A stretch of 64,000 nt of DNA from Epiperipatus broadwayi (GCA_028023455.1 JAQFVV010000008.1:15810001-15874000); one strand, 5' to 3'. Counted from the stretch's first letter, positions 1-45,227 are shown. Numbers and translations are program-made. Notes: a model not told the origin generated them from the sequence alone.

Positions 1-1292
1 AAATGAATATCTATATTTTATTTAAGATATGATTTTATATGGTTATTAAATTTTTTTTTGATTTGTAAATATATAGATATATATTTACATTATCTTAGAA
101 CGTATTACATTCAAATATTAGCCTTTCAAGCTAATTGTGCATACGCTTTGCGAGTGTTAATAATAAATAATTACTTTGTAATATTTATTATTATAAAGTT
201 AAGAAAATATTTTAATGGCATGAAACACTGAGATATTCACAAAAACATTTTATTGAGTGGATATATGAATAAATTTAACTCTTAATAACAGAATCCTTGG
301 AGATGAACTGAATTTGAATTATTGTGTCATGGTAACAGTATCTAGGATAATGGTATAAATATGATATCATCAAAAAAAAAAAAAAACTATATAAACCCCA
401 GATCTTAGTTTGGAAGTTCTCAATTTTCACTTCAATAGATAGCTACATAAAGTTTATGTGGTATGAATATTAATAATATTCTTCAAAATTTTAATTATGA
501 ATATGATAGATTAAGCTAATAAACATTTGCTCAAAAGACATCATGTCTTTTGAAAATCTGCATACCATCAGATAAAATCATCTCATTGTGGAATATAATT
601 TAAGTGCTACAATTCAACTCATGGAATACACAAAAATTGATAAATGCTGTAAATCAATATTAACATTGTGATATTTTATTAGGGAATATTTTGTTTAAAA
701 ATTGGAAGCATCGTAAAAAAAAAAAAATGAATAAAATTTTCAATGCTATTAAGTTGAATATACCTGAATTTAAAAGCAACATCTATCTATGTAATACAGG
801 AAATATGGGATTTCTAACAGATTCTTCAAAGAATTTTAAAATTTAAATTTATTGTTTTGTTTGTATTTATATAAAAATATATAAATTAATGATAAAAGTT
901 TGATGTATCTAATAAATATTATTTCAATGGAATTATACTTTAAAAAATATTCCATGTAGGTATTAAAATAAATTCAACAGGTAGATTTTTTTTTATCCTT
1001 TATTTTTTTTTTTTAGTATGCATATATTTGTTTATAGTACAGAAAATATAATATTATCATTAAAAAAAGAGGTTAAATTATATAGTAAATAAAATTAAAA
1101 TATTTTTTAATGATAATATTAATTTAAGCCAATAAATATCACATGATCATCATTTCTTATGCCTGCTTATAACTGTTACTAAAACAGGCAAAACTCTCCA
1201 TTTAGTAATGCCACTCAGTGCAAGCCAGAGTAATCAATGGATGCCAGAAAGCTTGTGCATAAAATCCCCATCTAGTGCCTACTCATCTAACA

Positions 1293-1334
1293 TCCCCAGA
1301 CTAGTTTCTGTCTTGTGGCCTTTGTCAGTGAGGA
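1293..1334 (-). ncRNA. Type I hammerhead ribozyme, degenerate copy
   Basis: Minus strand reads TCCTCA CTGACAA A GGCCACAAGAC A GAAA CTAG TC TGGGGA. The core G is mutated (CTGACAA) and stem II is damaged. Confidence 0.6.
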
Positions 1335-1756
1335 GCCTTGAATCTGAGAGCAATGTGCCTACTCCAGCAGCCATCTTTTATCTCTACTTAACTACAAAAC
1401 TGAGTCTTAAATTGAAAACCCAATAATATTTTCAATCCAAGCTCATTAGCCTATATAGTCATATAGGTCTGAAATCATAAAAAATGATGATCATGTGATG
1501 TTTATTGGCTTAAAACCAATCCTACCTAATAGGATAATAGTGGCTATGGTTATTAAAAAATCAAAGACACCAAAATTTATTGGTACTGAACTGAGTTCAG
1601 ACCTATATGACTATATAAGCTAATGAGCTTTGATTAAAAATATTATTGTGTTTTCAATTTAGACTCATAGTTTTGTAGTTAAGTAGAGATAAAAGATGAC
1701 TGCTGGAGGTTGCATTAGATCATAAGATCTAGGTGCAGTGCTCTCAGATCCAAGGC

Positions 1757-1798
1757 TCCTCACTGACGAAGGCCACAAGCCAGAAACTAGTCTGCGGA
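1757..1798 (+). ncRNA. Type I hammerhead ribozyme (core intact)
   Basis: TCCTCA-CTGACGA-A-GGC CACAA GCC-A-GAAA-CTAG-TC^TGCGGA shows the CUGANGA and GAAA core, a palindromic minimal stem III (CUAG) and a GUC cleavage triplet. Stem I extends as ATCCAA/TTGGAT and ATCTAG(G)TGC/GCACTAGAT (1727-1821). Confidence 0.8.
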
Positions 1799-2228
1799 TG
1801 TTGGATGTGTAGGCACTAGATGGAGATTTTATGCACAAGCCTTCTGGCATAAATTGATTACTCTGGCTTGCACTGAGTGGCAATACTGTATGGAGAGTTT
1901 TGCCTGTTTTAATATTAATTTATTTATATGAAAGTATGTTTATTTGTTTTCATTAAATATATATTTGAAAGAAATAAGTTTTACATACAAATATTTACGG
2001 ATAACCTTTATGATAGTGTATATTTAATAAACATTTAATATTTTATATATGCAAATTAATAAGTTTATGCTTAATATTATAAGAAAACAGTAAACAAAAT
2101 AAACATACTTATTAAATTGTCAAAATATTTTTTTATGTATTTATTTGACAATATTTATGCTAGTATATTTTTTATTAGGATTTTCTTGGTGTATCATTCA
2201 CAGCACACATTAGTTATCTTTATAAAAC

Positions 2229-2836
2229 TGTAATATCCGCACTTACGACTGTGCCAAGGTTATAACTGCAAGTCATACTGTGCGGTCAGCAAATAACGTT
2301 ATACAATTCCCACGCTGTTCTTTTCCAGCAAAGCTCTCCAACGAATTGGTCTGCCACGAAGCTCTCCAAACGAATTGGTCTGCAACGAAGCTCTCCAATG
2401 AATTGGTCTGCAACGAAGCTCAGCCACGGATGCTCTCCAACGAATGATCTGCACCGACTGCTCTCCAATGAATGGTCTGCAAGCAGATGCTCTCCAAACG
2501 AATGGTCTGCAACTTGCTACTGCGTGACTGCTCTCTACTACTCTCTATTACACTGCTCGATGTTCTCCCAATATGGCTGCTAATAACTGCCTTCCCCTGC
2601 GTAATTGTTACACCGTCTTTTATTGCTTGCTGATAACTGTAGCAATTAATCCTTGTCCAATCAGGTAACGTCTTTTATCCAGAAATATTTGCAATAAGCA
2701 AATATCTCTTGGAATTATCGTCCGCCATTATGTTACTTAACTTCCTCCATTATCAGCGCACGATCTACAACAACCACTCGAACAAATTCTAGTTTTTCTA
2801 GAGTGCACAATGTCTGCCATTTTTACAAACACTACA
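2229..2836. mobile_element. Solo LTR (608 bp) with internal minisatellite
   Basis: Starts TGTAATA and ends CTACA. 5-bp TSD AAAAC at 2224-2228 and 2837-2841. A truncated homologous copy lies at 52653-52865. Confidence 0.8.
2331..2513. repeat. ~28-bp minisatellite (GCTCTCCAACGAATTGGTCTGCAACGAA), about 6 units
   Basis: Tandem units read directly inside the solo LTR. Confidence 0.9.
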
Positions 2837-5190
2837 AAAACCATGCAATAGCTACAAACAGATAAATGATAATTAATTCATGATTAAATTTACTAAGCAA
2901 GGAATATTTTTATTTGCTTCTTAATTTTATATTTTTTGTGTGTTATTATTGTTTATAATAATATATTTTTATTTGTTAATTAAATTGGATTTCATGATTA
3001 TTCTAGTTAAATTATTATACTATACTTTAATATAAACTTTGAGAGTCTCAATATATATATATATATATAAAAGACCCACAAAATATGTCTTTTATATATG
3101 CTACCCGTGAAAATCTTCGTACCAACATATATATATATTGAAACATTAGGTAGCCAAAATATTAAATAAGAACATTTTTACATGTTTTAATCATTTTATT
3201 ACATGATATTTAGCAGTCTGAATAAGACTTTTTTTTTTTATCATAGATAAATATTATTATATTTAGTGGTCTTAAATGTAAAGTTGATTTAATATTTATT
3301 TATTTATGCTATTACATTTAGGTCCTACAACACATCATCTAATGATAATTAACCTGAGAACAATTCATCAGTAACCTTTTGCTAGTATAATAAATAAATG
3401 ATTAGTCAAGATTAAGATAATATTTTATAAATCAATATCCAGTTAAGTTAAAATAATAATTTATTCTATTATGTTCTGATGTCCAAAGAATTCTCATAAG
3501 TCATTTGATTATATATTTTATTATATTCTATTATAATTTGGTATCCAGTTAGTTTGACCTATCATTTGAATATTTTATACAATCACAATTTGGCGCTTAA
3601 CATTATGGGATATTGCTAAGTCATTCATTTGCTTATTTTTATTTTATACCATTATAATTTGGCATTCCAACTGAGACCTGAGAAATATTTTTTATACTGT
3701 TATAATTTGGCATCCCAACTAAGGCATGAAAAAATCATTTATTTATTTTATATATTTTATACTGTTAAAATATATATACACACATTGTAACAGTACAATA
3801 GTGTACATCTTATCTTTGTTCAAGTTGCCAATTTATGTGGAGATTCACAATGTGGTATGTGTGGCTAGCAAATATATCACTGTTTAATTCCTTGTTGGAT
3901 ATTTATTTGAATGATGTCATTTTTGAGCAAATAAAATTATGTAATAAATTTCTTTTGCTAGCCTATATTATGCTTAAATTTTACAGTACAGTAATTATGA
4001 TAGAAGCAGTTTTCTTTAGATCATATTTATTGATTAATTTATAATTATATAAGATGTCACAGCAGTTAAAGCAGATCGGTATATCTACAATGAGAATATA
4101 ACTCTTATACCTACCTTTTCATTACTATATCCCAGAATTTCTGTTCATGCAAAGAATAGAGCAATAAAAAAAACTGAAATTTTATGTAATACAACATGAA
4201 TTTAATTAATAAAAAATTTAAGAAATAATTTGATTCCAAAACTATTAAATATTAAAATTATAACAAAAATTAATATACAAAAGCTGTCTTTTGATAATTG
4301 GCAAAGTAAAATAAATCTATAATCTAACTTGAGTTAATTATTGAAATATTATCACACTCCAGTCATAGAACATCAAGAAAGCAAGATTCACTGTTTAATA
4401 TTCTCATCTTAGTCCAGAATGAAGATGACTTGATTTATGACTGAATTATTAAATAAAATATAGAATTGATTTTAATTAACATAATCATTCTTTTTAAATT
4501 AACATATAATTATAAAAAAAAAATCTTTTTCAATAGAAAAAAATAAATAAGTAAATAAATTAATTTTAAATATATGTCAAACTTTCCTTTTTTCATCTGT
4601 TGTTCTTTTATTTGTTACTCTTCCTCTCAAACTTGAAAATTCTTTCTTCTGATTGATTTATCATTCTGATTTGAAAATGAAATAAATGTAAAGGCTTCTA
4701 TGCAGCTTCAGTAGACATTTTACATTGGTACGTCTCTTTGAGCACGTTATGCGCTTGTCAGATGATGTTTTGTTTTCTTCTTTATTGACGTAAAAAGTAT
4801 AAACATGATGTCAATCAAAATATGGGCATTTGATAGCTCAATGACGTAGCTTTCCAAAGATGTCTACCTCAAAAAAAATCTGGTGAAATTTTGCAGCAGT
4901 TTTAATTGACCACAGTATTTATTTATTTTTTTGTTTTTTGTTAACTTTTGTAATTATCATGAAGCGATAAAAGAAAAAAAATGGTTTACCGAATGCAAGT
5001 CAACATTTCCGCATGTTATTCACAAACAAGACCTAGAGCTTCAATGTAATGACATGTAAGTATAAAATTTTAATTTTTTTAATAATATTTAATTTTTATT
5101 TTTAAATTTTTGAAAAAATTATCTTTTTTATTAATTTTAATTTGTAGTTAGTAACTTATATATTTATTTATGCTCATATAGAATTCATAT

Positions 5191-5256
5191 CTACCATAAT
5201 TTTCTAAAGTTCTACCGTAATTTTCTAAAGTTCTACTGCAATTTTCTAAAGTTCTA
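5191..5256. repeat. 21-bp tandem repeat x3
   Basis: CTACCATAATTTTCTAAAGTT / CTACCGTAATTTTCTAAAGTT / CTACTGCAATTTTCTAAAGTT. Confidence 0.9.
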
Positions 5257-5578
5257 ATCCATTTATTTTATAAAAATAATGATTTTCAAAAAGTTTAATA
5301 ATTTATTATTTATAATTATGTTTATATAATATGTTTGTGTTTACAAGTAATGAGTTATAAAACTAATAATCAAATGTATAGAAAGATTGCATACGCAGGC
5401 ATATAATCAAATTCTGATTCTTGTTTATGTTTTTTTTTTTTTTTATTCTTGTTCATGCTTTAAAGTCACTCTGTTTTTGCTATATGTTTCATAACATTAT
5501 TTTCAAGTCTATACCTAACAAATAAACTATATGCAAATAAATTAAATCTATGTGATACAATAAATATAACAAGATAGG

Positions 5579-5705
5579 ATCACTTGTGTGCATAAAGAAT
5601 ATAAACATCACTTGTGTGCATAAAGAATATAAACATCACTTGTGTGCATAAAGAATATAAACATCACTGGTGTCCATAAAGAATATAAACATCATTGATG
5701 TACAC
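5579..5705. repeat. 28-bp tandem repeat x4.5
   Basis: ATCACTTGTGTGCATAAAGAATATAAAC repeated; the last units diverge. Confidence 0.95.
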
Positions 5706-10879: not shown

Positions 10880-12243
10880 TGTTACGTATATTAAGATGGA
10901 GCCACGGTGAAGCCAGCACATCTTTTCTTATAGGAAGTGTAGTAGCAAAGCCCGAGTTGAGACTAGGTTAGGACATAAGTCCCCCGCCACTTCTGAACAA
11001 AAATGTTCCTTTCATTCGCAGCATGACGATCAGTCCCAGGGTACCGGCTTTTGTCGCAAGAACCCTTGAGTTACTCATCCATCTGCAGAGTGACTTTTCT
11101 TATTGTTATTTACCTGTGCCATAGTGCATTGGTAAAATCTTATGCAGCCAACTCTACCTCCTTAATATATCACTTTCAGCATTGATCTGAAAATTCTCTT
11201 GAAAGCCAGGTTCGATCTAATTTTATTTGAGCTGGTTTATTCGCTCGCCTTTAATAGAATATTTGTAATAATAAATTATTCGTTTTGATCAAGGCTTAGT
11301 ATGATTTCTTACGTATAATAGCCACAAGCTAATAGGAGTTGGCATAACTATATTGATAGACATAACATAGTGATTATTTATGTATTCTTTGTAAATATTA
11401 ATTCTTATTAAGCGCAATGTCAGCACGTAATACTTATATAAAGCTAAAGCTTTAGTACATGCGCCTTGAATGCTTAATTTTAGCAAGAGAGATCTCTACA
11501 AATCATAACACGAGATTCGACTTTATAAAGATAAGAGGGACCCTCTTATCTCTAACCTATTTTTCTTAATTATATAGGATTTGCCTATATAATTAAGAAA
11601 AATAGGTTAGAGATAAGAGGGTCCCTCTTATCTTTATAAAGTCGAATCTCGTGTTATGATTTGTAGAGGTATTCCTTGTAAGTAAATTTAGAAGATGAGA
11701 ATCTGTTAAACTCATCTGTTCTAAAACATTAATTACTGCTCGTATAAACACATCCTTAAATTAATCTGTAAGAAGAGTTTGTTATCTCTTCATCTCTCCA
11801 AATGCCTGCGTGCATTGTTTATACTCTAGTAATTCTATATATGGGTTGCTTGATTTATGATTTACTATTGCAATAAATACATTGTTAAATTAATCTAGTC
11901 TTTCTCCGTCTCATTTATTCAATCCAATTCTAATTATTGATCCTATTAATTTATGAATCTATGCATTAATAAATCTTTATTAGAAATAGTATTAGATTTT
12001 AGGTAATAGCACTGCATAGTCAGGAGTCTTCATGTTTCTCCCTGCCCTATGCCGGCTGCGAATAAAATTGTATACTACATGTAACTTCAAGTGTATTTCT
12101 TCGTAGAGTCTTGAGTCGTGGAGTACCGGCAAACGAGTTGAAATGTGGTCAGATTCCGGATGTCACATCCTGGTCTGGTCGATTTTGGCCTCTTTGTCTG
12201 GAGTCTAGACTCTGTTATGCGAACGTACGAAACTTGTGGTACA
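10880..12243. mobile_element. Probable long solo LTR
   Basis: Starts TGTTACG and ends GGTACA. Flanks ACATA/ATATA are a near-identical 5-bp TSD. AATAAA at ~12060; GC and CpG richer than the flanks. Confidence 0.5.
11494..11668. repeat. Perfect inverted repeat: 85-bp arms, 5-nt loop
   Basis: 11494-11578 is the exact reverse complement of 11584-11668; the loop is ATTTG. Each arm contains the nested palindrome GATAAGAGGG-N-CCCTCTTATC. Confidence 0.97.
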
Positions 12244-26399: not shown

Positions 26400-27131
26400 T
26401 TTCTTCAGGTGATTTTCCTGTAGATGTGGAAAGCGTAATGTATTGATATAGCATTGCCATGTCTAATGCTTTGACAATGTCTGTATAGTTTTGTTTACTT
26501 AATATCAACTTCAATTATTGCATTGCTTTTTCAGCTATCCCATTGAATTCTGGGTGATACGGAGTACAAATACGTTTCACTTCCCATTCATCTAAGAATA
26601 ATTTTATTTCTTCTGAAATAAAGCCAGTTCCATTATCCGAGACCAAGACTTCCGGTGAACTATGGCATGAAAATATTTTCTGTAATATCCTGATGGTTTC
26701 TGCTGCACTAGCGCTTCTTGCTAATTTATATTCGGCCCACCTAGAGCCAGCATCTATTAATACAAAAAAACATTTTTCCATTTATTGGACCTACATGTTC
26801 TATGTGCACATGGCTCCATGGACTGTTAGTTTTAGGCTATGATGTAAAAATTTTCTTAGATGCTTTTGCAGTAGATTGACAAGGCTTGCATTTTTTTATA
26901 TGTTTCTAGTTCTGCCCCCATACCCGGCTAATAAATATAAGTGTGAGCTAAAGCTTTTGCTCTAACTATGCCCAGATGCCCTTCGTGCAGTATTTCCAAT
27001 ATTTTAGGACGAATACAGCCCTTTGCCATTGATAGATGTTGACGCACACTCCATAAAGATTTATTTAAACAGTAAGGACGTTTTCTGGGCCATCCCTCTC
27101 TGATCAAGTTGATAGTGTCTCTTGCGTTCAT
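26400..27131 (-). pseudogene. Gypsy integrase (HHCC + DDE core)
   Basis: ILEILHEGHLGIVRAKALA (zinc-binding region). FFVLIDAGSRW...LVSDNGTGF...PYHPEFNGIAEK (D,D,E). Confidence 0.9.
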
Positions 27132-27289
27132 CTAGCATTAGTTGCACTATTTATCATTTTAGTCTTCCAATGGTCTAAGTAACATATTTCTACTTCATTT
27201 TCAGTTTTTTCTGTTGAATCCAGTACACGAGATAAAAGTGTCTGCATGTTTTATTTGTTTACCCTTCAGACAAAATTAAGTCGTAATCA

Positions 27290-28660
27290 TATGCTGATAA
27301 AAAAATGTATCAGCGAATCAGAACTTACGTGGTCAGGAGCTACATTTTTAATGGCAAAAATTCCCAATAATGGGCGATGGTCGGTTATTATTTTAAAAGA
27401 ATGACCACAAATGTATTGGTGGAATTTCCAAACTGCTGCTATTATAGCTAACGCCTCTTAGTCCAGTTGGCTGTAGTTTCTTCCAATCTTCATTAATGTA
27501 CTAGACATAAAACCTATAGGGCATTCCCCATTCTGTGATGGATGACTAAGCACTGCTCCAATTCTATAATCAGATGTGTCAGTGGTTATTGTTATAATAA
27601 ACCAGTAAACGAGTTGATGTAAGCAACACCTTGTTTTTGAAAAGCGCCCTCTTGTGTTTCTGTCCATTTCCATCGCTGATTTTTCTGAAGTAAATCATAT
27701 AAATGAGTGGCTACATGTGGTTTTCCTTTTAGAAAATTTTCAAAAAAAATAATCAGTTCCAAGAAAGTCTGAAGTTCTTTAATATTCTTGGAAGTTTGAG
27801 CATTCATAATTGCTTAATTTTTTCCAGGTCAGGTCTGATTCTGGCGCTTGAAATAATATGACCTAAAAATTTAATTTCTGTCTCGTTCCAAATACACTTT
27901 TTCTGGTTAAGTTTTGCTCCAAATGTTAGTAACCTTTCACATATCTTTTTTAATTTTCTATGCAGCACTTGCTCAGAATCTGCTATTACGAGGATGTTGT
28001 CAAAAAAAGGTGCTACTCCCTCCAATCCTTCTAATAATTTGTCGATCTTCCCTTGGAATAGACCCAGGGTGATTGTTATGCCAAATGGCAACCAATTGTA
28101 TTTATACAACCCTTTATGCATTATTATAGTTAAAAATGCAGCAGTTTCTTCCAACACCGAGTGGCATTCAAATCTTGTTTTGCAAAATATATTGTTCTAC
28201 CAAGTCCATCTATTATCTCTCTAACATTTGATACAGAATAGGGACTTTTGTTATGCACTTAATTACAGTTACTCTGTAGTTCCCATATATATAGATTTCT
28301 CCATTCTGCTTCGTTATTACCACTATAGGTGTAGCCCAGTCTGTATCTTCAACAGGCATCAGTACCCCTTCTTTACTAATATGTTTAATGCCTCTTCGAC
28401 CTGTAGTCTTTGTGCAAAAGGTATTTTTCTCGGCTTAAAATGGATGGGTTTTGCACCTTCGCAGAGCTCAATTTCAACAGGCTTAGTATTGATTTTACCT
28501 TGCCCCTCTGTGAACAGTTTAGGAAAATTAACCTTTATCTCATACTCTATATTAATTTTATTTATTACGTGTACTTTTATGCCTAAAGGTGTAAACCATT
28601 CCCTGCCTATTACGAGCCCTATATTTCATTTAACTATATATAGATTTAGCTTTTCTTGGC
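27290..28660 (-). pseudogene. Gypsy protease C-terminus, reverse transcriptase and RNase H
   Basis: GREWFTPLG, KPRKIPFA, DWATPIVV, YKYNWLPFG, FFDNILV, FLGHIIS, TDTSDYRIGAVLSH, RNYSQLD. Confidence 0.92.
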
Positions 28661-30746: not shown

Positions 30747-30759
30747 AGCTACCAATACT

Positions 30760-32735: not shown

Positions 32736-32738
32736 ATT

Positions 32739-33101: not shown

Positions 33102-35930
33102 TAATTTTTAATGAGTGTGGGCATTCTTCCACATACATTGCAACTTTCATCTTAAATACTGTCTACTCTTCTATAAATTTGTTGAAAATGCAATAAAAAA
33201 ACTTATATTATATAATTCTCATGCAAAGACAATTTTTTTGCTAAAGTGATAAAAAAAATAATAATTTAATATTATTGCATTTTTGTATTTACAGATAGAC
33301 ATCTTAAATCATTAAAAATAAAAAGATTGGCATTCTATTTAAAAAGTGAAGTACACATTTTTACTGCAGTGAAAGCATATATTTATACATGTTCATTTAG
33401 GAAAATCAAAATTTATTGTAGGGTTTATACATATATTGGCATCATTAATTTATCATAATAAAATTAAATTACTTATTAGATAAAATCCAGAAAAATCCTG
33501 AACAGTTCTAAAATTTTCTAAGCCTACACTTCTCTTGAATTTGCTATTAGGGGCCATGTTTTTTACTGCAGACATTGTGAAGGTAATGGTATATTTTAAA
33601 TTTAATGATATATATGTTATCTTATAGGAACAAAATATTTTTATGCTTAGATTGCAAATGTTTGTATGGGCATGATAATTGGTGATTAATTTCACAGTTG
33701 TTTTAGAAATCACAACTTTTTTCTAGAATGCAATTAAATGTACATTTCCTTGGGAAATTTTAAAGAAGCTGATATTCTTTTATAACACAAAAGAATCAAA
33801 ATAAATTGTAATCACAAAGCAAACATATTGATATATATATATTTTAAAATAATATATTTACCTTTTATGATAAATTCTTTTTCAATGTGCGACCCTGCTG
33901 CTTGTATAATAGCATTTGATATGGTTCCATCTAATAAAAAGTTGTGAAAATACATATTATTAAATAACAATCATTTAGAATTTTAATATTTTGCTAAATA
34001 TTTCTTGAACTTGTTATATTTATATGAAATCAGATCTTTCTTCTAAAAACTCAATGATTTATTTTATGTTAAAAAATATAATCATAATTCTGTCATAATT
34101 AGAATGCCCATGTTGTATAATAAGGTATTTTTGGACATTGATATATTTCATTTGAATTTTCATGATTTCTTAAATCAATGTAAACTAAATTCTTGGTTTG
34201 TAAAAGCTGTACTATATTGGAATTATTACTAGTCTGTTATTACATGCTTAATAATAAAATTGAATTGAACTTTAATTCTTTATGAGTTTTCTGCTATAAA
34301 ATTTTTCATTACTATTATATTGATAGATTCATATTTTTAGCTTTTACAACATCTCTGTTTAATAATATTTTTATTAATCACAATTATGAGAAATTATTTA
34401 ATACTTTTAATTAAATTGTAATTTATTAGAGACAAATGGTTGGAATGGTAATTACATTTAAAAAAATGCAGAAAATTAATAATTAAAAATAATTTTATTA
34501 ACAATAACAAAAAAAACAACAATCTGCAAACTCATAATCAGTTTTAAAATTAAATGAAGGGAAAAAATAATAATAATAAATGTCATAAAAATACATTTTT
34601 AATAACTTAGGTCTAAATGCTTAATGCTTTGATCAGGTTAATTAGTTAAGCAATTGGCCATGTGCTTCATCATTTAACATTTGTAATATCAATTTTAGTA
34701 TTTTTTCATGATTATTATATTATCTACATAAATTATTTATCTTCAGTCCATGCATTGATTTTCTCTACATTTTTCCTTGATCTTATCAATTATTCTTTCC
34801 AAATATATTATAAATATACCTGATGGGATTATATTTCCTCAGCTTGAATTTTTTCTAATTTAAAACCAGTTTCCATTTTTCCATCTATTCTCATGGTTGC
34901 TTATAAATTATCTTAGATATTCCACAAAAAATTAATTAGTATATTTATCAACTCCATATGAGTTAAATATAGACCAAGTCATCCTTTGGCCACTGCTCTC
35001 AAAAGTTTTCTGAAAATTAAAAACAAGCACATATATATTCTTTGTTTTTTTTTTTTTATGTTTTTCTCTGCAAAATGATAAATATCTGTTAGATGGTACT
35101 TCTATTTTTTCTAAATCCTCCTTTTTTTCTTTGTAGTTTTTAGTATTCCATTTAACATGTTCATTAATATTTTTCCTAAAATGCTAATTAACCCTAAAGT
35201 TTTGTTATCTTCTCATTCAGTCTTGTTTTGGTTTTAGTAGATAGCATTAACATATGACTTTGTCCATGCTTTGAGAACCGTCCTTTCTTCCTTCTCAATA
35301 TTTAAACAGGCTATAATTTTCTTTAATAAACTATTTCATCCATGCCAGACCATTTACTCAGTTAATATATCATTTCATGGGCTCCAAATAATTTCTTCCA
35401 ATAAAATATCTTCACTATTATAAGTCAATAATAAAAACAGGCAAAACACTATATATATTGTCACATACAACAAGCTAGAGTAATCAATGGATGTCAGAAG
35501 GCCTTCGTCAGTGAAAAACCTTGGATCGGAGGCATTGCACTTAGATCTTAGGATCTAATGCAACCTTCCAGGAACCAACCTTTTATCTCCATTTAACTAC
35601 AAAACTATGAGTCTTAAATTGAAAACACCTTAATGTTTTCAATCCAAGCCCATCAGCTTATATAGTCATATGGGTCTGAATCCAGTTCAGTACCCATACA
35701 TTTTGGTGTCTTTGGTTCTTTAATAACCATAGCCACCACTACCGTATTAGGCAGGATTGGTTTTAAGCCAATAAATATCACATGACCACCACCTCTTATG
35801 CTTGTGTATAACTGTTATTAAAACAGGCAAAACTCACTATATATATTGCCACACACAACAAGTTATAGTAATCAATGAATGCCAGAAGGCTTGTGCATAA
35901 AATCCTCATCTAGTGCTTACTCATCCAATA

Positions 35931-35972
35931 TCCCCAGACTAGTTTCTGGCTTATGACCTTCATCAGTGAGGA
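35931..35972 (-). ncRNA. Type I hammerhead ribozyme (core intact)
   Basis: TCCTCA CTGATGA A GGT CATAA GCC A GAAA CTAG TC^TGGGGA. Confidence 0.8.
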
Positions 35973-36227
35973 GCCATGGATCTGAGAGCACTGCACCTAG
36001 ATATTAGGATCTAATGCAACCCTCCAGCAACCACCCTTTTTCTCCATTTAACTATATAAGCTGATGGGCTTGGATTGAAAACATTAAGGTGTTTTCAATT
36101 TAAGACTCATAGTAAGGTGTTTTCAATTTAAGACTCATAGTTTTGTAGTTAAATGGAGATAAAGGGTGGTTGCTGGAGGGTTGCATTAGATCCTAAGATC
36201 TAGGTGCAGTAGTCTCAGATCCAAGGC

Positions 36228-36269
36228 ACCTCACTGACGAAGGCCATAAGCCAAAAACTAGAGTGGGGA
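36228..36269 (+). ncRNA. Hammerhead ribozyme, inactivated copy
   Basis: CTGACGA is intact, but GAAA has become AAAA and CTAGTC has become CTAGAG. Confidence 0.55.
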
Positions 36270-37884
36270 TATTGGATGAGTAGGCACTAGATGGAGATTT
36301 TATGCACAAGCCTTCTGTCATCCATTGATTACTCTAGCTTGTTGTGTGTGGCAATACACAAGCATAAGAGGTGGTGGTCTTGTGATTTTATAAGTCAATA
36401 ATGTTGAGCAAGTTTTGCCTGAAATTTTTTCATTAAGTTATTCTATATAATTCAACACAGTGTTCAGACCATTGTTTTAAAATTTCACTTTTGTGTGAGA
36501 ACATTTTTCCATGTTCATTTTTTATTATGGTTTTGATGCCATTTTTGATAAAGATATCTTTACAACTTTATATTCATTTCTCTGAATTTACATTATCCAT
36601 ATTTTTTATATCTCTACATTGAACTTCCAATATTTTTTTTTATCTTTCCTGACTCCTTTTATTTAAATTATACATTGACTTATACTAATGCTCTGTAAGT
36701 CTCAAAAAGTCCCTTTAACTTTTCTTAATTCCCTTTTTCTAGACTAGCATACAGTGTTTCGCATAATTCAATCTTTCTCAACCTTTTTTTATTCTGGTCC
36801 AACTTTAACAAATAGCTTCCAGTAAAACCTTATAGCACAATCTTATTAAGATTTTCAACTCTTGAATCTAATTTTTTTCTCTTTGTCCAAATTTTTGATT
36901 TTTTCTTTAAGTGCTGACTAATAATTTTACACTATTTTTGCATCTGAAACCTTAATTAAACCTTTTCATTTTTGAAATAAAATTTTATTCAATTTCTTAA
37001 ATTCTGCTTGATATATACAATTACTAGATCATGATCTGAAACTTTAATTATCTCCTAAAAGATGTGATATTTATGTACTGATACTGACTATCTTGTATTT
37101 GGTAGCATTATGATTTCATGACTCTTGTTTTTTCCCCATCATTCAATCTGAATGTTTATTTTCTGACATCTTCTATCGGAATTGTGTCTTGGAAATTGTC
37201 ACATATTCTAAAGCTGTTGTGTTTGTAAAAATATGTACACTGCAATGCAATAATTAGAAGCCTTTGGGTACTCCAGAAAAAGTAAGAAAAATATATTAGA
37301 ATATATTTTTTTTAGATCATTAACTGATAAGAGTATAATTAATGAACGTTCGGGTAAGTAATTTAAGAAATGCGAACGTTATATAATTAAATCAGATAAA
37401 AAGTAAAAAAATTTAATTAATGCATAATTTTGCATAGGAATTAATAATAGGAAATATTCATTTAATATGTGATAAGAAAATTGTATTTGGTAAATGCAAG
37501 AAATATTTGCTAATTAAAAATATTTTTTGATACAATAGAAGTGGAAGTGACTAATTAAAAACACCAAGAGAAAAACAAGACTGATAAGAGTCAAGCATGA
37601 ACTCTGGATTGCCGGATGTCCAAACTGCGTGAATAAATAGTTTGTGCAGCAAAGTACGTCATTTTCATTCCGGTGGAGTTACTAAATGAACTGTTGGTGG
37701 ATGACTTTAATGAACAATGGCTGAAAAAAGCTTAAATGATGGAGTAGTGCTCTTGTCTGAACCCAGCATGATTAAACCAGGCAAAACTCTCTACACATAT
37801 TCCCACTCAGTGCAAGCCAGAGTAATGAATGGATTCCAGAAGGTTTGTGCATAAAATCCCCATCTAGTGACTACTCATCCAATA

Positions 37885-37926
37885 TCCCCAGACTAATTTC
37901 TGGCGTGTGGCCTTCGTCAGTGAGGA
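37885..37926 (-). ncRNA. Type I hammerhead ribozyme (core intact, stem III U-G)
   Basis: TCCTCA CTGACGA A GGC CACAC GCC A GAAA TTAG TC^TGGGGA. Confidence 0.75.
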
Positions 37927-38278
37927 GCTTTGGATCTGAAAACACTGCACCTAGATCTTAAGATCTACTGCAACCCTCCAGCAACCACCTTTTATCACTA
38001 CTTAACTTCAAAACCATGAGTCTTAAATTAAAAACACTATAATATTTTCAATCCAAGCTCATTAGCTTAGGTCTGAACTCAGTTCTGTACCCATACATTT
38101 TGGTAACTTTCGTTCTTTAATAATCATAGCTACCACTAAGCTAATGAGCTTGGATTGAAAATATTATAGTGTTTTCAATTTAAGACTCATGGTTTTGTAG
38201 TTAAGTAGAAATAAAAGGTGGCTGTTGGAGGGTTGCATTAATCCTAAGATCCAGGTGCAGTGCTCTCAGACCCAAAGC

Positions 38279-38320
38279 TCCTCACTGACAAAGGCCATAA
38301 GCCAGAAACTAGTCTGAGGA
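38279..38320 (+). ncRNA. Hammerhead ribozyme, core-mutated copy
   Basis: TCCTCA CTGACAA AGGCCATAAGCCA GAAA CTAG TC TGAGGA has a perfect stem I and a core G-to-A change. Confidence 0.65.
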
Positions 38321-38689
38321 TATTGGAAGAGTAGGCACTAGATGGGGATTTTATGCACAAGCCTTCTGGCATCGAGTGGCAATACATACAAAGAGTTTTG
38401 CCTGTTTTAATAACAATTATAAGCAAGCACAAAAAATGGTGATCATGTGATGTTTATTGACCCAGCATGATTGTAAGCAGCAGCTAAATGTAGCCAAAAA
38501 ACTCCATTAGTTTGAGGAGTCAAGCCAAAGTGCTTTGGAAACTGGAATCAAAGGAAACTGTGCAGAAAGCAGCAAATTGTTACATGGGTCGTGGGAATTG
38601 AACCATAAGTGAATTATATATACTGTGTTGGAGTGCATCAATAACTTTTCGCTATCAATAATATTTTATCATTACCCAGTCCTTATCTA

Positions 38690-39140: not shown

Positions 39141-40469
39141 CAACTGTTAGGGTTATTTAACTAAAAATGACATGCAAATAAAATGACATCCAATGTAAAT
39201 TTGATATCAAAATCTTTTATATTATTGTAATAAGCATTTATTTTATATAGTGCATTTTGAAAGGCTGATCTTTAATGTATTACTGTAATAGTAAATTTCT
39301 TTTCTAATCAGAAAAAGGTGTTATTCTTTTAAATTTAAGATTATCTTTTCTAAGTCTATATTTTTTGGCTAAATTTAATACAAAATTAGACAAAATAGGA
39401 TTTAGCCTTTTATATTACTTTATAGATCACTATTCAGCTATTTCACAATATGAAATAGATTTAAATACCATGTCTTTATTTTAGATTTAAATTATAATAT
39501 ATAAGTAAAGTATATAAAAAAATAACCTAGCTTGAGCTCATTGTACTTCTTATCCAATCTGTGGTGAATGAAGATCCAAGGATGATTATAGGTAACAGAA
39601 TTTTTATAAAATTCAACCAATGTTTTCAAAATAGGTAGCTTTTCTGACAAACCAGAGGTTGTCAAAGTTTGAATGAACAGTAAAAATATCATTACAGTTA
39701 AATATTGTGTCAGACCATGTATAACGGCCATGCACAAAATGGCTGTTGCTGAAGATTCAGCACAGCTAATTTTTATCGTATCAAAATTATGTAATTTTAA
39801 TAGATCAAATAAATCATAATTTAGATACATATTGGAAGTATTTATATATGGTACATAAATGAATGGGTTTGGTCTATACTATATTCCTATTTACATCCAT
39901 AGTATAGTGTATGTATTATATTAATAAATTTTATTCGCACAGCAAAACTATATAAAAAGAAAAACAGCTTGTAATAACATTTGTTTACATGTGGAACACT
40001 TTTTTGTTCCGACACACGTATATATAAATGTTTTTTTTTTTTCTGTTATTTCTAAAAAATTGTTTAAATAGAATTTAAATCTTCTATTTATTATAATGAG
40101 ATTTTTTTGTTAATTAATACTGATTTATAAAGGAAAAAACTTTTTGTAAATTGTAATTTACTTTTAGCAAAAAAATGTTTTGTATTAAAAGAAATTTGTT
40201 CTTTTTGATCGTTTGTAAAAATAAAATCAAAAAGTTGATTTTATCTAAAGAATGAAAGCATAACGGGTGATTTATTTAGCCAAGATGGAAACTATATAAT
40301 TTCCAATATTAGTAAAAGGTATACTTTGATACACAAAAAGTAAAAGAATGTATGTAAAGTATATAAAAATTAAAATTAAATTATTGGCTGATGCAATAGC
40401 TCGTAGGGGGTATTAAAATTAGATTGATAAGAAAATCATATGTGCTACCTACTAGGTGCATAGAGTTTA

Positions 40470-40820
40470 ATTGCTTTTTGCTGGTCCCAGGAATTGAACT
40501 GTATATGTTTGCTGAGAAAAAAAAAGTTTGTCTCCAGCCTGTCCAAGTAAGGAGATGGTAGATGTTTGCTAAAAATAGTAAGTTGCTTTTTGCTTGTCCC
40601 AGGAATCGGACTGTATATATTTGCTGAGAAAAGAAAAGTTTGTCTCCAGCCTGTCCAAGTAAGAAAATTGAGATGTTTGCTGAAAATAAAGTTGTCTCCA
40701 GCTTGTCCAAGTAATTGGATGATATATGTTTGCTGAAAATAATAGTTGTTGCCAGCTTGACCAAGTAATCAGATGGTAGATGTATGCTGAGAATAAGAGT
40801 TTCCTCCAGCTTATCTAAAG
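40470..40820. repeat. ~55-bp tandem repeat x6-7 with a 112-bp dimeric higher order
   Basis: TTTGCTGA anchors at 40508, 40565, 40620, 40676, 40729 and 40783. Confidence 0.85.
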
Positions 40821-40889
40821 AGCAGAAAGAAAAAAGAAATGAGATTCGAAACTAACCATTCGGATATGGTAGTACTGTTAAATAAATAT

Positions 40890-41230
40890 TAGAAAAGCTA
40901 TTGAAAGTATGAATCATCTCTCCGTTAAAAATCATATTAGAAACTTTAAGTCTTATTTAACAACTTGCTAGGCGTAATTTCCAATCCTAAGAAATTATAA
41001 GTAAAGCCGATTTTTCTACGGGAAAATCGATGTGAAAAAAAAAATATCTACATGAAAATTATAACCACAGACCTTAGAACAAATACTAGAGCGAGATGGC
41101 CTTAATGTTTGCTAAATTCTACCAGAAAATCATGGAGTAGACTTCTAGCAGCAGTACACCGCCCATTCATCCCTGAAGTCCGAAAATGCTGTAGGAAAAG
41201 CAGCATACCCTGATGGAAGAAAGACTCTAA
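40890..41230 (+). mobile_element. Jockey-like LINE 3' remnant
   Basis: LSVKNHIRNFKSYL resembles LSLxNKLxIYKxxI; also AKFYQKI. Confidence 0.3.
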
Positions 41231-42149
41231 CACATATATTGGTGAAAGTTTATTCACCCTAGTTAGTACCCGTATGGTCCACTTTGAAGTCGAACTTAAT
41301 GGAATTCAGAAGAATGAGTGTATATTTTCTTATAATATTAATTCTGTGTTTCTTTTATATATAATTAATTTGTTCTCACTTACTTATGTATTATTAATAT
41401 TAACCCTTTTATTTAATTTTTGTAATATGCATAATATTTGTTGGTATTTACATGCATGTCTGACCTAAATCCGCCAAGCGCAGAATTATTTTTTTATTTC
41501 CTAATCTTTAAACTACTACGGTGACACCTCATGCTGGGTGTCCGATGACCATATTCATTAAGCATCATTTTATGCATCCAAAGTAGATGTAGATGTTTAG
41601 TATATATAAATATAATTGAGTACGAAAATATTGATGTGTTTATAATGTCAATACTTATAAACTTTGGGAATAGCCGTTAGACATGCGTGTAAAACATCAG
41701 ATTATATTTCTTGTTGAATACATTTGTTATATACACTTGATTTTTTAATTTATAACTTTAAAGTGAGAAAGGGGGTATAGATCACAACCATTATGTGATC
41801 ATTTAAAAAAATTTTTTTTTATATATGTGCATTTATTTTCTGTAAATAAATATTTAATTTAATCAAGCAACTTCTCATTAATATTATATTTTTCATTATT
41901 TGAAATATTAATTAGATTAAATTATTATTTTTTATATGTAATTGGTGGAGGGTGATAAGACAAAAAAAAAGGGGGGGGGAATAATAAATAGTAGATTTCA
42001 CTTTTAAATCGTTTGCCGTTTCACTTAATTAGTTTGATAAATTATTTGTTCGTTAGTATATAACTATAATTATTTAATCATTACTGATCCACTTATTAAC
42101 CTGAGATAGAAAAAAAGAAATCATATAATGAGCTAGACAGGGATAACTT

Positions 42150-42590
42150 ACTGGAGAGTTGGATTATTTCATTATTCATGTCCGAACTATTTATTAAGAT
42201 AAATGACAGTGATCATTCATATTTTGCACACTCTCTCGTGGAAAGAAAAAGGAGAATAAACAATAATAAAGTTCTTGAGCAAGGGTGGCGCAAGAGGCTA
42301 AATTAGAATATTTCAGTATTTTTAAAGGTGTGCAAAATCCAAAAGTGATCAACGTTTAGTTAATCGGCCGATTGTGGGATAATTTAAAAAGGAAGGCTTC
42401 GATTTACCTAATTTTAGGCTGAATCTACTTCCTCTAATAATTATTTTGAGATATGTTCTTCATATTTAACCAACAATATTTTCAGGGAATTATTATCGAT
42501 TTTTCATTCAGCAACATACGTCACTTTATGCTCTGTGCGTATGGAGGTCAAAGATAGATAATACCTGGGTGGAAAAATCGGACCGGTACA
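42150..42590 (+). mobile_element. Possible Tc1-like remnant
   Basis: LWDNLKR-like motif (~42375) and a terminal-like CCGGTACA (~42583). Confidence 0.25.
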
Positions 42591-42769
42591 ATATGAACAA
42601 ATAAATATTCACTTTTTTCTTTTTGGCAAAAATTGAGAATTATGCATGTCAATATTAATATAATTCAAAATGTCTATAAAAGTAAATAAGTATATTTTGT
42701 TTGTTTCTTTCAAAATATTACTGAATATTGATCATTAATGTAAATGCATACCCACAGCATGACAAAGCA

Positions 42770-42957
42770 TCATATGATCAACCATTTCTTATGCTTCCAC
42801 AAACTGTTAAAACAGTATCAATTCTTTCAATAGAGTAGTGCCAACCAATGTCAGTTAGAAACTAATCTGGGGATATTAGATGAGTAACACTAGATAGAGA
42901 TTTTGAGCACAAACCTTCTAGCATCCATTAATTACTGTGGCTTGCACTGTGTGGCAC
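42770..42957. mobile_element. Rep-A fragment (short forward piece plus inverted piece)
   Basis: CATATGATCAACCATTTCTTATGC...AAAACAG, then the inverted GAAACTAATCTGGGGATATTAG...GGCTTGCACTGTGTGGCA. No TSD found. Confidence 0.75.
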
Positions 42958-43314
42958 ATAAATAAAAACTTTATCAAATTTATTTTTTTGTTAAAATGGA
43001 AAAAAATAAATTAAATTTCATAAACTAATGAAATAGCATTATATTTTAGATGATTATTTGTTTATTAGTATGGAGAAAGCACATATTAATCACAGATAAC
43101 TGGTAAAATCTGTCCATTATATAATTAATAAATAAATAAGTAATAATATAAAAGACAGTCCACTATCTTAAATAATATTTTTTATAAATAATTCTTTCTG
43201 TTTCTAGAAATATTGAGCATAATTATTAGTACATTGATTCCTATCATGAATTTCTCTACAGCACTTTATTATTTGCCTCTCTTTGTATGAAATACAAAAT
43301 TCAAAACTTTTTAA

Positions 43315-44148
43315 TGAATTATATTTTTGTAGTGTTATTTTCACTATACCACTCTTGTGCAAAACAGGAACTGGTTTCTATCCACTTTTAACACCTTTTG
43401 GATGCATGCAATGTGAACAAAGACATGTGAAAAAGATATATGATCCCCAAAATAGACACTTCATACTGAACCAGCATCACATTCTCTTACATATATCTTA
43501 GTATCACTATTCACTATATATAAAGGGGGAATTACTACAGTTTAATTGATAAATGCCAAACTTACTGCCCTCACCATTTTACTAAAAACCACTTGATGGA
43601 AATATATTATTAATTTTTATTAATCATTCATTAGACTACAGATTATCCATTTAAGGAATATTTCTGTAGTGTTATTTTCATTACAACACTCTTACAGAAG
43701 GGGACTGGTGTAGTGAAAATAATACTACAAAAATATTATTCATTAAATGGATAATCTCTAGTCTGACGAATAAAAATTAATAATATATTTCCATCAAGTG
43801 GTTTGTGTCAAAATTGTGAGGGCAGTAAGTTTGACACTTGTCAATTAAACTGTGGTGATTCCCCATCTATATATAGGGAACAATGATAAAGATATATCTA
43901 AAACACTATTTATCTGGACCAAACAGATGAATGCTGGTTCAGCACGAAATGTGCATCTTGGGGATCATATATTTTTTTCATAAGTCTTTGTTCATATGTT
44001 TGATTACATCTAACAATAAGGTGTTAAAAGTGGATAGAAACCAGTGCCTTGCGTAAGAGTGGTGTGGTGAAAATAACACTCCAGAAATATTATTCATTAA
44101 ATGGATAATCTCTAGTCTAATGAATGACTAATAAAAATTAATAACACT
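43315..44148. mobile_element. Rep-B palindromic insertion (second family, ~340-355-bp monomer)
   Basis: About 1.15 monomers forward, inversion at ~43708, then about 1.25 monomers inverted. 11-bp TSD AAACTTTTTAA (43304-43314, 44149-44159). No evident homology to Rep-A. Confidence 0.85.
43919..43963 (+). ncRNA. Degenerate hammerhead-like motif in Rep-B
   Basis: CCAAA CAGATGA A TGCTG GTT CAGCA C GAAA TGTGCA TC TTGGGG: one core change (CTGA to CAGA) and a perfect 5-bp stem II. Confidence 0.5.
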
Positions 44149-45227
44149 AAACTTTTTAAATATTATTTTTTTTTACAAAAATCTAAAATTAAATGAATAT
44201 ATGAATACTATATTAAATTTTGTATTCATATACAATTTAAACATACTTTTATGCTTTGTAGTTGAATATATATGTATAAAACATTATTTCTAATCCACAA
44301 ATAAGAACACAGGTTCTTTTTTAAAAAAAATTCATTACTTCTCCTGCTACAGATTTGTTGCATGTAATTTTTTTCTTATGACTATAATGCTTACAAATAT
44401 AAAAAAAAAATGATTTGGATTTATTTGTTCATACAATTATTAGAGAGAAGCAAATAAATGTTTAAGAACATTAATGACTCAGCTTACCTAAAAAGAATTA
44501 GAATGATTTGTTAATCATATATTTGTCATATATGATTACCACAGATTATATAATTAATTATATAACCTAAAAAATAATCAAGATGAAAAAAAAAAAGTCA
44601 ATGACAAGTATTATAAAGGTTTATAAACAAAGCCTACTAATACTTTCTTAAATGTAAATTTAAAATAAAAAATGCTAAAAATTATGTTTGAGTGAGACTT
44701 GTATAAATTTTTAAACATTTAATGTAAATTGGATTGCTATTATCCAGTCATTTAAACAGTTTTAAATTCTGATAATCTGATAACAAGCAATCAAAATCAG
44801 ACTAATTTGCAGAGGTTTCTTAGTCCAAAAACATTGTCTTCTCTTCCACTATTCATCTGCGAAAAAATACTTGAGATGATTTTACCTTGTAGTAGGCTAT
44901 TTAAACATACAATTAAATATAAACTGTGACTAAAACATTTATTTACTGTAATCTGTATTTTAGCAAAAAATTTTTTTTACTATTTTCAATAAAAAACACT
45001 AATAATAAGTGAACTTCCATAGCCTTTCATTCCTTTTTACAATCCTTATATTAAATAAATCTCAAAAAATCCATTTCTTTGTACTCTTCAATAATTTTTA
45101 TTCAATTCAATCAATAAATAAGAAATAATACAAAGTAATTGTATTTTAAGCTCTGGAAAAAATTATTACAGCTGAAACAGTCAGATAATTGTGAAAAGAA
45201 AAAGGAGATTTTTTTAAGTTAACTTAC

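Follow-up and report, generated by a model that had tools for sequence, protein, structure and literature searches.

Inverted hammerhead-bearing insertions in the window

How did short non-coding repeats carrying a hammerhead motif come to be inserted as pairs of inverted arms, and which machinery inserted them? This question is raised by the window (the whole 64-kb stretch of Epiperipatus broadwayi DNA that was analysed), which contains three complete insertions of a repeat termed Rep-A (insertions 1–3) and one of a repeat termed Rep-B (insertion 4). A first-pass annotation had described these as palindromic, tails-out dimers of hammerhead-ribozyme elements, and had attributed them to reverse transcription primed at both nicks of a staggered cut. 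The four insertions were confirmed position by position, with inverted arms between exact target-site duplications (TSDs) of 13, 15, 13 and 11 bp.

Insertion 1 lies between exact copies of the 13 bp TAATATTAATTTA at 1114–1126 and 1910–1922. Its left Rep-A arm (1127–1477, minus strand), delimited by BLAST against the sense monomer and end sequence, is antisense on the plus strand and runs from an outer end of the long, tailed type (T; monomer position ~176) to an inner end at monomer position ~254. The right arm (1478–1909, plus strand) is sense, terminates at an outer end of the short type (S; ..GCCTGTTT) and contains a hammerhead core at 1763–1792 with a predicted cut after 1792. Insertion 2 is flanked by exact copies of the 15 bp TTATAAGTCAATAAT at 35418–35432 and 36388–36402. 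Its left Rep-A arm (35433–36083, minus strand) is a partial tandem of ~1.4 monomers with an S outer end, an internal deletion of ~68 nt in the outer unit and an intact hammerhead pattern at 35937–35966 (minus strand). The centre and right Rep-A arm (36084–36387, plus strand) comprise a 28-nt tandem duplication at 36085–36140, an internal deletion of ~35 nt, a mutated hammerhead at 36234–36263 and a T-type end inside the tail region.

Insertion 3 is bounded by exact copies of the 13 bp ACCCAGCATGATT at 37761–37773 and 38460–38472. The left Rep-A arm (37774–38140, minus strand) has an S outer end and a hammerhead remnant at 37891–37920 (minus strand) with an altered loop III, while the right Rep-A arm (38141–38459, plus strand) has a T outer end with tail and a hammerhead at 38285–38314 in which G8 is changed to A; the central ~20 nt could belong to either arm. 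Insertion 4 consists of Rep-B between exact copies of the 11 bp AAACTTTTTAA at 43304–43314 and 44149–44159. Its left arm (43315–43698, minus strand; ~1.1 monomers) has a short, S-type outer end and a decayed hammerhead remnant near 43440–43475, and its right arm (43699–44148, plus strand; ~1.3 monomers) carries a hammerhead at 43924–43957 and extends ~50 nt past the end point of the left arm, the extension forming the tail. Each of the four TSD strings is present exactly twice in the 64-kb window, in the flanks only. An isolated Rep-A fragment, recognized by similarity to monomer positions 1–90, is located at 42868–42956 (plus strand).

Relative to the hammerhead motif, all four window insertions have an antisense arm on the left and a sense arm on the right, with the RNA-sense 3′ ends outermost, as the tails-out description requires. 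The arms are inverted, but the insertions are not true palindromes, as their two arms are unequal in length, inner end point and outer end. At one outer end only, a tail adds ~35–55 nt, an asymmetry absent from the first-pass annotation. The sole reverse transcriptase (RT) in the window is of the Ty3/gypsy type (26.5–28.2 kb, minus strand), in agreement with the earlier statement that the window holds no RT/GIY-YIG partner from a Penelope-like element (PLE). A LINE-like repeat of 2.9 kb is located at 39.7–42.6 kb.

Hammerhead motifs of the two families

Rep-A (monomer ~454 nt) and Rep-B (~340–355 nt) are both non-coding and, as had been proposed, are unrelated families with a hammerhead motif in each. 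The Rep-A motif, CTGAYGA-AGGCCACAAGCC-A-GAAA-CTAG-TC, is found at 1763–1792 (plus strand) and 35937–35966 (minus strand), with mutated versions at 36234 (plus strand), 37891 (minus strand) and 38285 (plus strand); none is expected in shuffled sequence. Most hammerhead copies in the window are mutated, including that of Rep-B at 43924–43957, which reads CAGATGA (U4 to A). The majority sequence of 82 Rep-A copies has every core base (C3U4G5A6N7G8A9 ... G12A13A14 ... A15.1-U16.1, H17), with a fully intact core in 36 of the 82, and the majority of the Rep-B family (2,844 genomic pattern matches) has the canonical CTGATGA...GAAA.

Helices I and II are present in the minimum free energy fold, and helix III consists of 1–2 bp closed by a loop that is (quasi-)palindromic, ACUAGU in one hammerhead and AUGUGCAU in the other. 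Fold energies of the hammerhead stretches were no better than those of shuffles, and Rfam hammerhead covariance models gave no match for Rep-A or Rep-B at the gathering score or E≤10, including searches with the 161-nt and 121-nt stretches. The designation of these repeats as hammerhead-ribozyme elements is based on a core motif read by hand in both families, not on any Rfam model match; self-cleavage is a prediction from this motif. Minimal and canonical PLE hammerheads resemble those of Rep-A and Rep-B in the core CUGANGA...GAAA...UH, in an extra nucleotide after A9, in a helix III of 1–2 bp with a palindromic loop, which implies dimer action in tandem transcripts, and in being overlooked by standard models (PMC4209133). 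However, G10.1-C11.1 is usually conserved in PLE hammerheads (PMC4209133), whereas at 10.1/11.1 Rep-A carries A.A and Rep-B carries A-U, and helix I of Rep-A differs in being interrupted and unusually long (~20 bp).

Genome-wide architecture of the insertions

A sample of 32 complete Rep-A insertions, unbiased with respect to end type, was obtained with a query from which the tail had been removed. Tails-out inverted dimers comprised 81 % of these insertions (26 of 32) and the remaining six were single-arm. An exact TSD of at least 9 bp was kept in 18 of the 32 (mismatched-flank control, 2 %); Rep-A copies are old, with ~12–15 % pairwise divergence, and an exact TSD persists in only about half. 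Oriented TSDs (n=28) were AT-rich and 9–17 bp in length (median 12.5), and enclosed the whole dimer. Identity between the two arms of a dimer was 87.5 % as compared to 85.3 % between loci. The earlier claim that each dimer arrived in one event is supported by TSDs that flank the entire dimer and by arms that are about as diverged as the family overall.

The outer ends of Rep-A dimers follow a strict pattern, with one S and one T end in 24 of 26 (binomial P=5e-6). The S arm ends at monomer position ~115–125, within a few nucleotides of ..GCCTGTTT(TAA), and the partner arm ends ~35–55 nt further, within ~20 nt of ..TTTATTGGCTT. The one-sided tail is attributed to a start at S for one end and at T for the other in almost all insertions. 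Comparison of end sequences detected no poly(A) or simple-repeat tail at either Rep-A end, and the junctions fall in two fixed zones. Arm lengths ranged from 45 to 1298 nt, equivalent to 0.1–2.9 monomers in tandem, and no ORF separated the units. Inner ends were scattered across the whole monomer, were unequal between arms and showed no enrichment at the predicted hammerhead cut. Two cDNAs joined centrally, as had been suggested, would account for this anatomy, but microhomology at the join is at most compatible with the data, the central junctions having a median overlap of 2 nt and filler in 19 of 56. Rep-B, as represented by the window insertion and one tails-out genomic pair, has the same plan, with an 11-bp TSD and a one-sided tail of ~50 nt. 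No empty insertion site was found for these elements.

Relationship to Penelope-like elements

PLE insertions comprise a partial tandem (pLTR) and an inverted 5′-truncated copy, with a tail of 30–40 bp that is often at one end only (PMC8557442, PMC3846280). A partial tandem, a head-to-head inverted copy, a one-sided tail and a variable duplication together make up the PLE footprint, and Rep-A and Rep-B are therefore interpreted as PLE-mobilized hammerhead elements. The likeness to PLEs (PMC3846280; PMC8557442; PMC11167929) encompasses the outward 3′ ends of the arms, 5′ truncation that is extensive and differs between copies, TSDs that vary between about 8 and 17 bp and lie in AT-rich DNA, a short extension confined to one end, a hammerhead that precedes the RT start zone by a comparable distance, and the sufficiency of pLTR-type sequence for mobilization in trans. 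In vitro, a PLE protein was reported in 2024 to cleave and extend both strands, with two internal start points for reverse transcription, which flank the tail and lie ~85–92 nt past the hammerhead cut (PMC11167929). Rep-A and Rep-B differ from PLEs in having no ORF, a non-coding monomer of 340–454 nt being directly repeated between the start sites, and in having a tail of 35–55 nt as compared to the published 30–40 nt. A further difference is the one-S-one-T rule, whereas in vitro neither DNA strand showed a preference between the two start sites (PMC11167929); because of this lack of preference, the strict pairing observed here is not accounted for by the published biochemistry.

PLE endonuclease genes are abundant in this genome. 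A search for GIY-YIG (PF01541) identified 10,242 helper candidates, defined by this domain alone, of which 150 were scored and all 150 passed the curated cut-off, and some of the candidates lie in open frames, of up to 901 aa. Approximately 20 neighbouring inverted GIY-YIG pairs were observed and all were arranged minus-then-plus (tails-out), with none in the reverse order. The proposal that Rep-A and Rep-B are non-coding and non-autonomous fits these data, and it is highly probable (roughly 85 %) that the RT/GIY-YIG protein encoded by resident PLEs copies them in trans.

A sense RNA, multimeric or circular, would be bound by the PLE protein, whose endonuclease would nick both strands of an AT-rich target at positions 9–17 bp apart. 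Each 3′-OH may then prime reverse transcription within the RNA at one of the two start zones, which for Rep-A would be located downstream of the hammerhead cut, at distances of ~115–125 nt (S) and ~150–177 nt (T). The two cDNAs would extend differing distances toward the 5′ end of the RNA and be joined head-to-head, with minimal homology at the join, if any, and gap repair would duplicate the target. Double priming at staggered nicks is supported by the insertion anatomy from which it was deduced. However, the novelty implied by the first-pass annotation did not hold, as the structure is that of a textbook PLE insertion (PMC3846280, PMC8557442) and priming on two strands was demonstrated in vitro in 2024 (PMC11167929); the mechanism is supported but not new.

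Form of the RNA template

PLE machinery could act on a linear multimer that is transcribed from genomic tandem copies and left unprocessed or, in a full retrozyme cycle, on a circular RNA processed by the hammerhead, ligated and copied by rolling-circle reverse transcription. A circular template would fit the observation that nearly all arms cross the predicted cut site and that some are 2–2.9 monomers long. Both hammerheads, with their short helix III and palindromic loop, belong to a class that acts in dimeric form within multimeric transcripts, and metazoan retrozymes of 170–400 nt accumulate as circRNAs (PMC7229834). However, successive units inside one arm were on average 86.6 % alike, with several at 76–83 %, and were no closer than unrelated copies. 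A single-circle template is disfavoured by this divergence because a circle would give identical units. In addition, the anole PLE mainly used unprocessed RNA and its hammerhead mutants inserted normally (PMC11167929). The circular form of the template is thus a possibility, though a rather doubtful one.

Alternative origins of the inverted arms

Mobilization of the repeat as a SINE by a LINE RT, with the second nick priming internally to leave the 5′ segment inverted in the manner of L1 inversions, was considered very improbable. Twin priming of L1, reportedly described by Ostertag and Kazazian in 2001, has a signature of variable TSDs, an AT-rich target and an inversion with both 3′ ends outward. 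This signature is shared by the Rep-A insertions, with their 9–17 bp variable TSDs, AT-rich targets and outward 3′ ends, and the genome contains LINE fragments, as shown by an Exo_endo_phos_2 match and by the LINE-like repeat noted above. Priming of cDNA from both nicks of a staggered cut and a microhomology junction would be further points of likeness. However, Rep-A has no poly(A) or simple-repeat tail at either end, and its ends lie in two fixed internal zones instead of at one defined 3′ end and a random site. Inversion is the rule for Rep-A, far exceeding twin-priming rates, and a hammerhead followed after ~100 nt by a start site is the arrangement of PLEs (PMC11167929). The helper would be a GIY-YIG/telomerase-like RT element and not an APE-type LINE.

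The two arms might instead be products of one cDNA that primed itself by snap-back, or a single arm might have been inserted in the ordinary way and only later doubled by inverted duplication or by palindrome-forming repair. An origin by self-priming has been suggested for those inverted junctions of PLEs that contain palindromes (PMC3846280), and single-arm insertions do occur (6 of 32). However, arm lengths are up to several-fold apart, outer ends differ systematically (S versus T), the TSDs enclose the whole dimer and arm divergence is about equal to that of the whole family. The inner ends lay within 25 nt of each other in seven of 56 dimers, as compared to 6.3 expected by chance, indicating that they are unrelated. 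Snap-back and later duplication, including the formation of palindromes after insertion that the first-pass annotation had named as a refuting case, are therefore excluded, and are rated as improbable as a LINE origin.

Least credible is a foldback or long-TIR MITE type of DNA transposon moved by a transposase, which would explain long inverted arms with flanking direct repeats but not TSDs varying from 9 to 17 bp inside one family, the lack of fixed terminal inverted repeats (because the termini differ by 35–55 nt), a different arm length and centre in every copy, arms made up of tandem monomers or an orientation rule that follows the ribozyme strand.

Relationship to animal retrozymes

Mobilization by PLEs places Rep-A and Rep-B alongside the metazoan non-LTR retrozymes (PMC7229834; Li, Clavereau and Pollet 2026, bioRxiv 10.64898/2026.07.22.740005), which are likewise non-coding AT-rich repeats of 150–450 bp with a type I hammerhead and a tiny palindromic helix III, present in thousands of copies per genome and co-occurring with PLEs. 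Retrozymes have been described as tandem arrays that range from dimers to large multimers and whose TSDs are noted only 'when present', and the available portions of the two accounts make no mention of inverted dimers or of a tail, whereas dispersed inverted arms of 0.1–2.9 units with TSDs predominate here. A further difference is that the present elements were read from DNA while retrozymes were seen as circRNA. Animal retrozymes have been proposed to be PLE derivatives. Rep-A and Rep-B are very probably of the animal retrozyme type, as hammerhead elements mobilized by PLEs, with the resident PLEs as their putative helpers.

Structure of the insertions in the window

The window (C8:15,810,001–15,874,000, in an assembly of 5.6 Gb) is AT-rich, with a G+C content of about 28 %. 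All four insertions in it have inverted arms, and each is bounded by an exact direct repeat whose sequence occurs exactly twice in the 64 kb, both times at the insertion flanks. For Rep-A, a non-coding family with a hammerhead motif, these target-site duplications (TSDs) are 13 bp at 1114/1910 (insertion 1, 1127–1909), 15 bp at 35418/36388 (insertion 2, 35433–36387) and 13 bp at 37761/38460 (insertion 3, 37774–38459); for the unrelated family Rep-B the TSD is 11 bp at 43304/44149 (insertion 4, 43315–44148). A 454 nt sense-oriented monomer from insertion 1, starting directly past the predicted hammerhead cut, served as the Rep-A reference. All Rep-A insertions in the window mapped to it with the left arm or arms antisense and the right arm or arms sense, which places the RNA-sense 3′ ends outermost (‘tails-out’). 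The Rep-B insertion has the same layout. The first-pass annotation had reported four insertions with inverted tails-out arms and exact TSDs of 13, 15, 13 and 11 bp, and this was confirmed.

Insertion 2 carries a perfect 28 nt tandem duplication (36085–36140) precisely at its head-to-head junction, which may be a trace of the joining of two cDNAs. No other large inverted repeats were found in the window except one small hairpin at 11.5 kb (11484–11678), near-perfect with 95 nt arms, 96 % complementarity and a 5 nt spacer. It gave a weak sub-threshold match to mir-1422 (33.6 bits) and probably represents a small repeat of foldback or MITE-like type.

Hammerhead motifs

Rfam detected no hammerhead, at the gathering score or at E≤10, in the whole window or in stretches of 161 and 121 nt, and hammerhead fold energies were no better than those of shuffled sequences. 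The pattern CTGANGA..GAAACTAGTC matched twice in the window and not at all in 100 shuffles. The majority sequence of 82 aligned Rep-A copies contains all core bases (CUGAYGA, A-GGC-CACAA-GCC-A, GAAA, CUAG, UC, then the cut) adjoining a long interrupted helix I. Helix III is a single A-U pair with the palindromic loop CUAG, and the base of helix II is A.A, not G-C. The core is fully intact in 36 of the 82 copies, with losses mostly due to CpG-type changes at N7/G8. The Rep-B copy in the window reads CAGAUGA; the family majority, from 2844 genomic matches to a degenerate pattern, is CUGAUGA-AUGCUG-GUU-CAGCAU-GAAA-UGUG, with a canonical core, a helix II of 5–6 bp and a quasi-palindromic helix III. 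Type I hammerheads of Penelope-like elements (PLEs) and metazoans have a tiny palindromic helix III and an extra base after A9, are missed by standard models and are thought to be active as dimers in tandem transcripts (PMC4209133). By motif, Rep-A and Rep-B carry putative hammerheads with traits like those of these published ribozymes.

The Rep-A palindromes also produced strong yet spurious sub-threshold matches to plant miRNA precursors (MIR7533, MIR1023 and MIR2606; E-values down to 6e-18) at 35909–36291 and 38018–38188. Foldback insertions of this kind are a trap for automated annotation as miRNA.

Rep-A across the genome

A search with a left-arm query returned at least 6806 candidates, and the majority of 30 fetched loci were tails-out dimers. 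As this query included the tail and so biased the sample, a second search used a 241 nt internal segment without the tail, yielding 29 new loci with 32 complete insertions. Inverted tails-out dimers comprised 81 % (26 of 32) of these and single-orientation insertions the other six. An exact direct repeat of at least 9 bp flanked 18 of the 32, including 16 of the 26 dimers; among deliberately mismatched left and right flanks, used as a control, repeats of this length occurred in 2 % of cases (mean 5.6).

The outer ends of the dimers are not equivalent, a feature missed in the first-pass annotation. The short (S) end lies at monomer position ~113–125, no more than a few bases from ..GCCTGTTT(TAA), and the tail-bearing (T) end lies 35–55 nt beyond it, at ~150–177, around ..TTTATTGGCTT. 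In the sample from the query without the tail, 24 of 26 dimers had one S and one T end, with one S/S dimer and one unclear (binomial P=5e-6). The tail was found on either side. Within the window, insertions 1–3 of Rep-A keep this S/T rule, as does the Rep-B insertion, whose right arm extends ~50 nt past the end point of the left arm. The S and T zones allow small local hairpins, with fold energies not better than shuffles.

When 28 TSDs were oriented from S end to T end, their lengths were 9–17 bp (median 12.5) and no target motif beyond AT-richness was apparent. A genome-wide search for the empty site of insertion 3 (left flank, one TSD and right flank, with up to three mismatches) gave no match, and the sole matches to a 13 kb query for an allelic contig were further copies of repeats. 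The claim that these elements insert as inverted dimers with TSDs is favoured by the genome-wide tabulation, with 81 % dimers and TSDs of 9–17 bp.

Arms, centres and template

Arms were analysed by re-mapping 56 Rep-A dimers with a trimer query. Arm length ranged from 45 to 1298 nt, with a maximum of 2.9 directly repeated monomers. Arms of several direct monomers indicate that the template was a tandem or circle of the non-coding unit rather than a pLTR-ORF-pLTR structure, in which pseudo-LTRs (pLTRs) flank a coding region. Between circular retrozyme RNA and multimeric linear RNA the choice is closer. Successive units within one arm were 86.6 % identical, and several only 76–83 %, which tips the balance slightly towards heterogeneous linear multimers and away from a single rolling circle; a PLE protein from anole likewise uses unprocessed RNA (PMC11167929). 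We therefore lean towards a linear template.

Inner ends were scattered over the monomer, with no relation between the two arms of a dimer: they differed by no more than 25 nt in 7 of 56 dimers, against 6.3 expected by chance. Nor did they cluster at the hammerhead cut (3 of 112 within 7 nt, 1.7 expected). Run-off of cDNA at the cut was rejected, as the trimer re-mapping places the arm ends that had seemed to lie at position 1 15–18 nt beyond it. At the centres, 37 of 56 dimers had 1–21 nt assignable to either arm (median 2) and 19 had 1–28 nt of filler. Identity between the arms of one dimer was 87.5 %, compared with 85.3 % across loci (P=5e-4), indicating that the arms are as old as the insertion and not a recent duplication. 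A trailing-polymerase model, in which a single RNA templates both cDNAs and the S arm is never overtaken by the T arm, was rejected by arm lengths; one fetched locus (L002) has a T arm of 681 nt and an S arm of 245 nt.

Match to the Penelope-like insertion footprint

The combination of features in the Rep-A and Rep-B insertions matches the typical structure described for PLEs. A PLE insert in Adineta vaga consists of pLTR-ORF-pLTR with an adjacent inverted pLTR, a 9 bp TSD and a 31 bp tail carried by one member of the inverted pLTR pair; the arrangement seen most often is head-to-head, and pLTRs alone are enough for mobilization in trans (PMC3846280). With the anole PLE protein, both strands of the DNA are cut and extended, and reverse transcription starts at two internal sites in the RNA, one on either side of the tail, 85–92 nt past the hammerhead cut (PMC11167929). 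Rep-A shares this geometry, with the cut site followed by S at +113–125 and T at +150–177, and Rep-B is similar (S ~+140, T ~+190). Given this footprint and the two-strand biochemistry, the earlier proposal of double priming with central joining is well founded and its interpretation supported. Double priming with central joining is an already published PLE model, and the insertions reveal no new class of element.

Other mechanisms fail on the same anatomy. L1-type twin priming, which could also yield inverted arms, would not account for the absence of poly(A), the two fixed start zones or inversion as the rule. Snap-back or self-priming is rejected because the dimer centres are not symmetric; together with later palindrome formation, it is also opposed by the unrelated inner ends, the unequal arm lengths, the S/T rule of the outer ends and TSDs placed around the entire unit. 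A foldback DNA transposon is at odds with variable TSD length and non-identical termini.

Helper candidates

As previously stated, no PLE ORF is present in the window. Its sole reverse transcriptase (RT), at 26.5–28.2 kb on the minus strand, belongs to a degenerate pol (26518–28196) and is assigned to the Ty3/gypsy type because RNase H (27461–27694) and an integrase core (26518–26781) accompany the RT domain (27807–28196). It was rejected as a helper, not being a Penelope-type RT; it sits in a G+C-richer stretch at 26–32 kb. A dispersed non-coding repeat of ~2.9 kb (39700–42617), with dozens of genomic copies at 76–86 % identity, was also rejected, being without coding capacity. Two fetched loci around some of its copies (L031 and L033) contain open frames with motifs that look LINE-like by eye; Pfam gave no match to these frames.

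Genome-wide, the Pfam GIY-YIG model gave 10 242 candidates, and all 150 that were scored exceeded the curated cut-off. Several matches lie within open frames of 800–901 aa, for example those of 871–901 aa on C12394, C6326, C135 and C12455. PLE polyproteins are of this size, and the frames hint that some Penelope-like elements may be intact. About 20 neighbouring inverted GIY-YIG pairs, 0.4–5 kb apart, were all minus-then-plus (tails-out) and none the reverse, indicating that autonomous elements of this genome share the architecture of Rep-A and Rep-B.

Rep-A in other samples and relation to retrozymes

Rep-A words were detected in 14 public runs (nine organisms, five studies), at 7–38 % of the words sampled; the matches are to contigs, none recorded as RNA. 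Four of these runs (organisms A, B, F and H) contained thousands of short contigs matching Rep-A; in many of them the match breaks off at 1900–1912, corresponding to the S end, and is followed by unrelated AT-rich sequence. In the contigs of these runs the hammerhead-proximal ~160 nt (window 1210–1305 and 1722–1785; monomer ~384–454 and 1–90) was covered 10–30 times more deeply than other parts of the monomer. PLE pLTRs, or other families of greater abundance, may contain this ribozyme module too. These matches show that Rep-A, or at least its ribozyme module, is present at high copy number in several related samples.

Animal non-LTR retrozymes are described, in the available parts of the literature, as tandem arrays with TSDs ‘when present’ (PMC7229834; a 2026 preprint, bioRxiv 10.64898/2026.07.22.740005). 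Those parts make no mention of inverted dimers or tails, both of which are features of Rep-A, and to that extent a full PLE footprint on hammerhead repeats adds modestly to the published picture. The footprint supports the proposal that animal retrozymes originated from PLEs, tying retrozyme-like repeats to PLE machinery by integration anatomy, beyond shared ribozymes. With copies in the thousands for each family, the repeats also offer many short insertions that can be counted and that bear the whole Penelope-type footprint without an ORF. For annotation, foldback insertions of this type should be masked as PLE-derived retroelements, not as miRNA hairpins or DNA transposons.

The one-sided tail rule is now quantified, and its strictness is the sole point that could carry new mechanistic information. 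In the PLE in vitro system both strands used both sites (PMC11167929), whereas strict pairing of one S with one T end is a feature of Rep-A; the strictness is left unexplained by the in vitro behaviour. One speculative explanation, which we consider rather unlikely, is that the pairing reflects a coordinated, asymmetric two-protomer PLE complex using a different RNA initiation site at each DNA end. If this were true, these abundant short non-coding elements would offer a natural view of how the second half of PLE integration proceeds.
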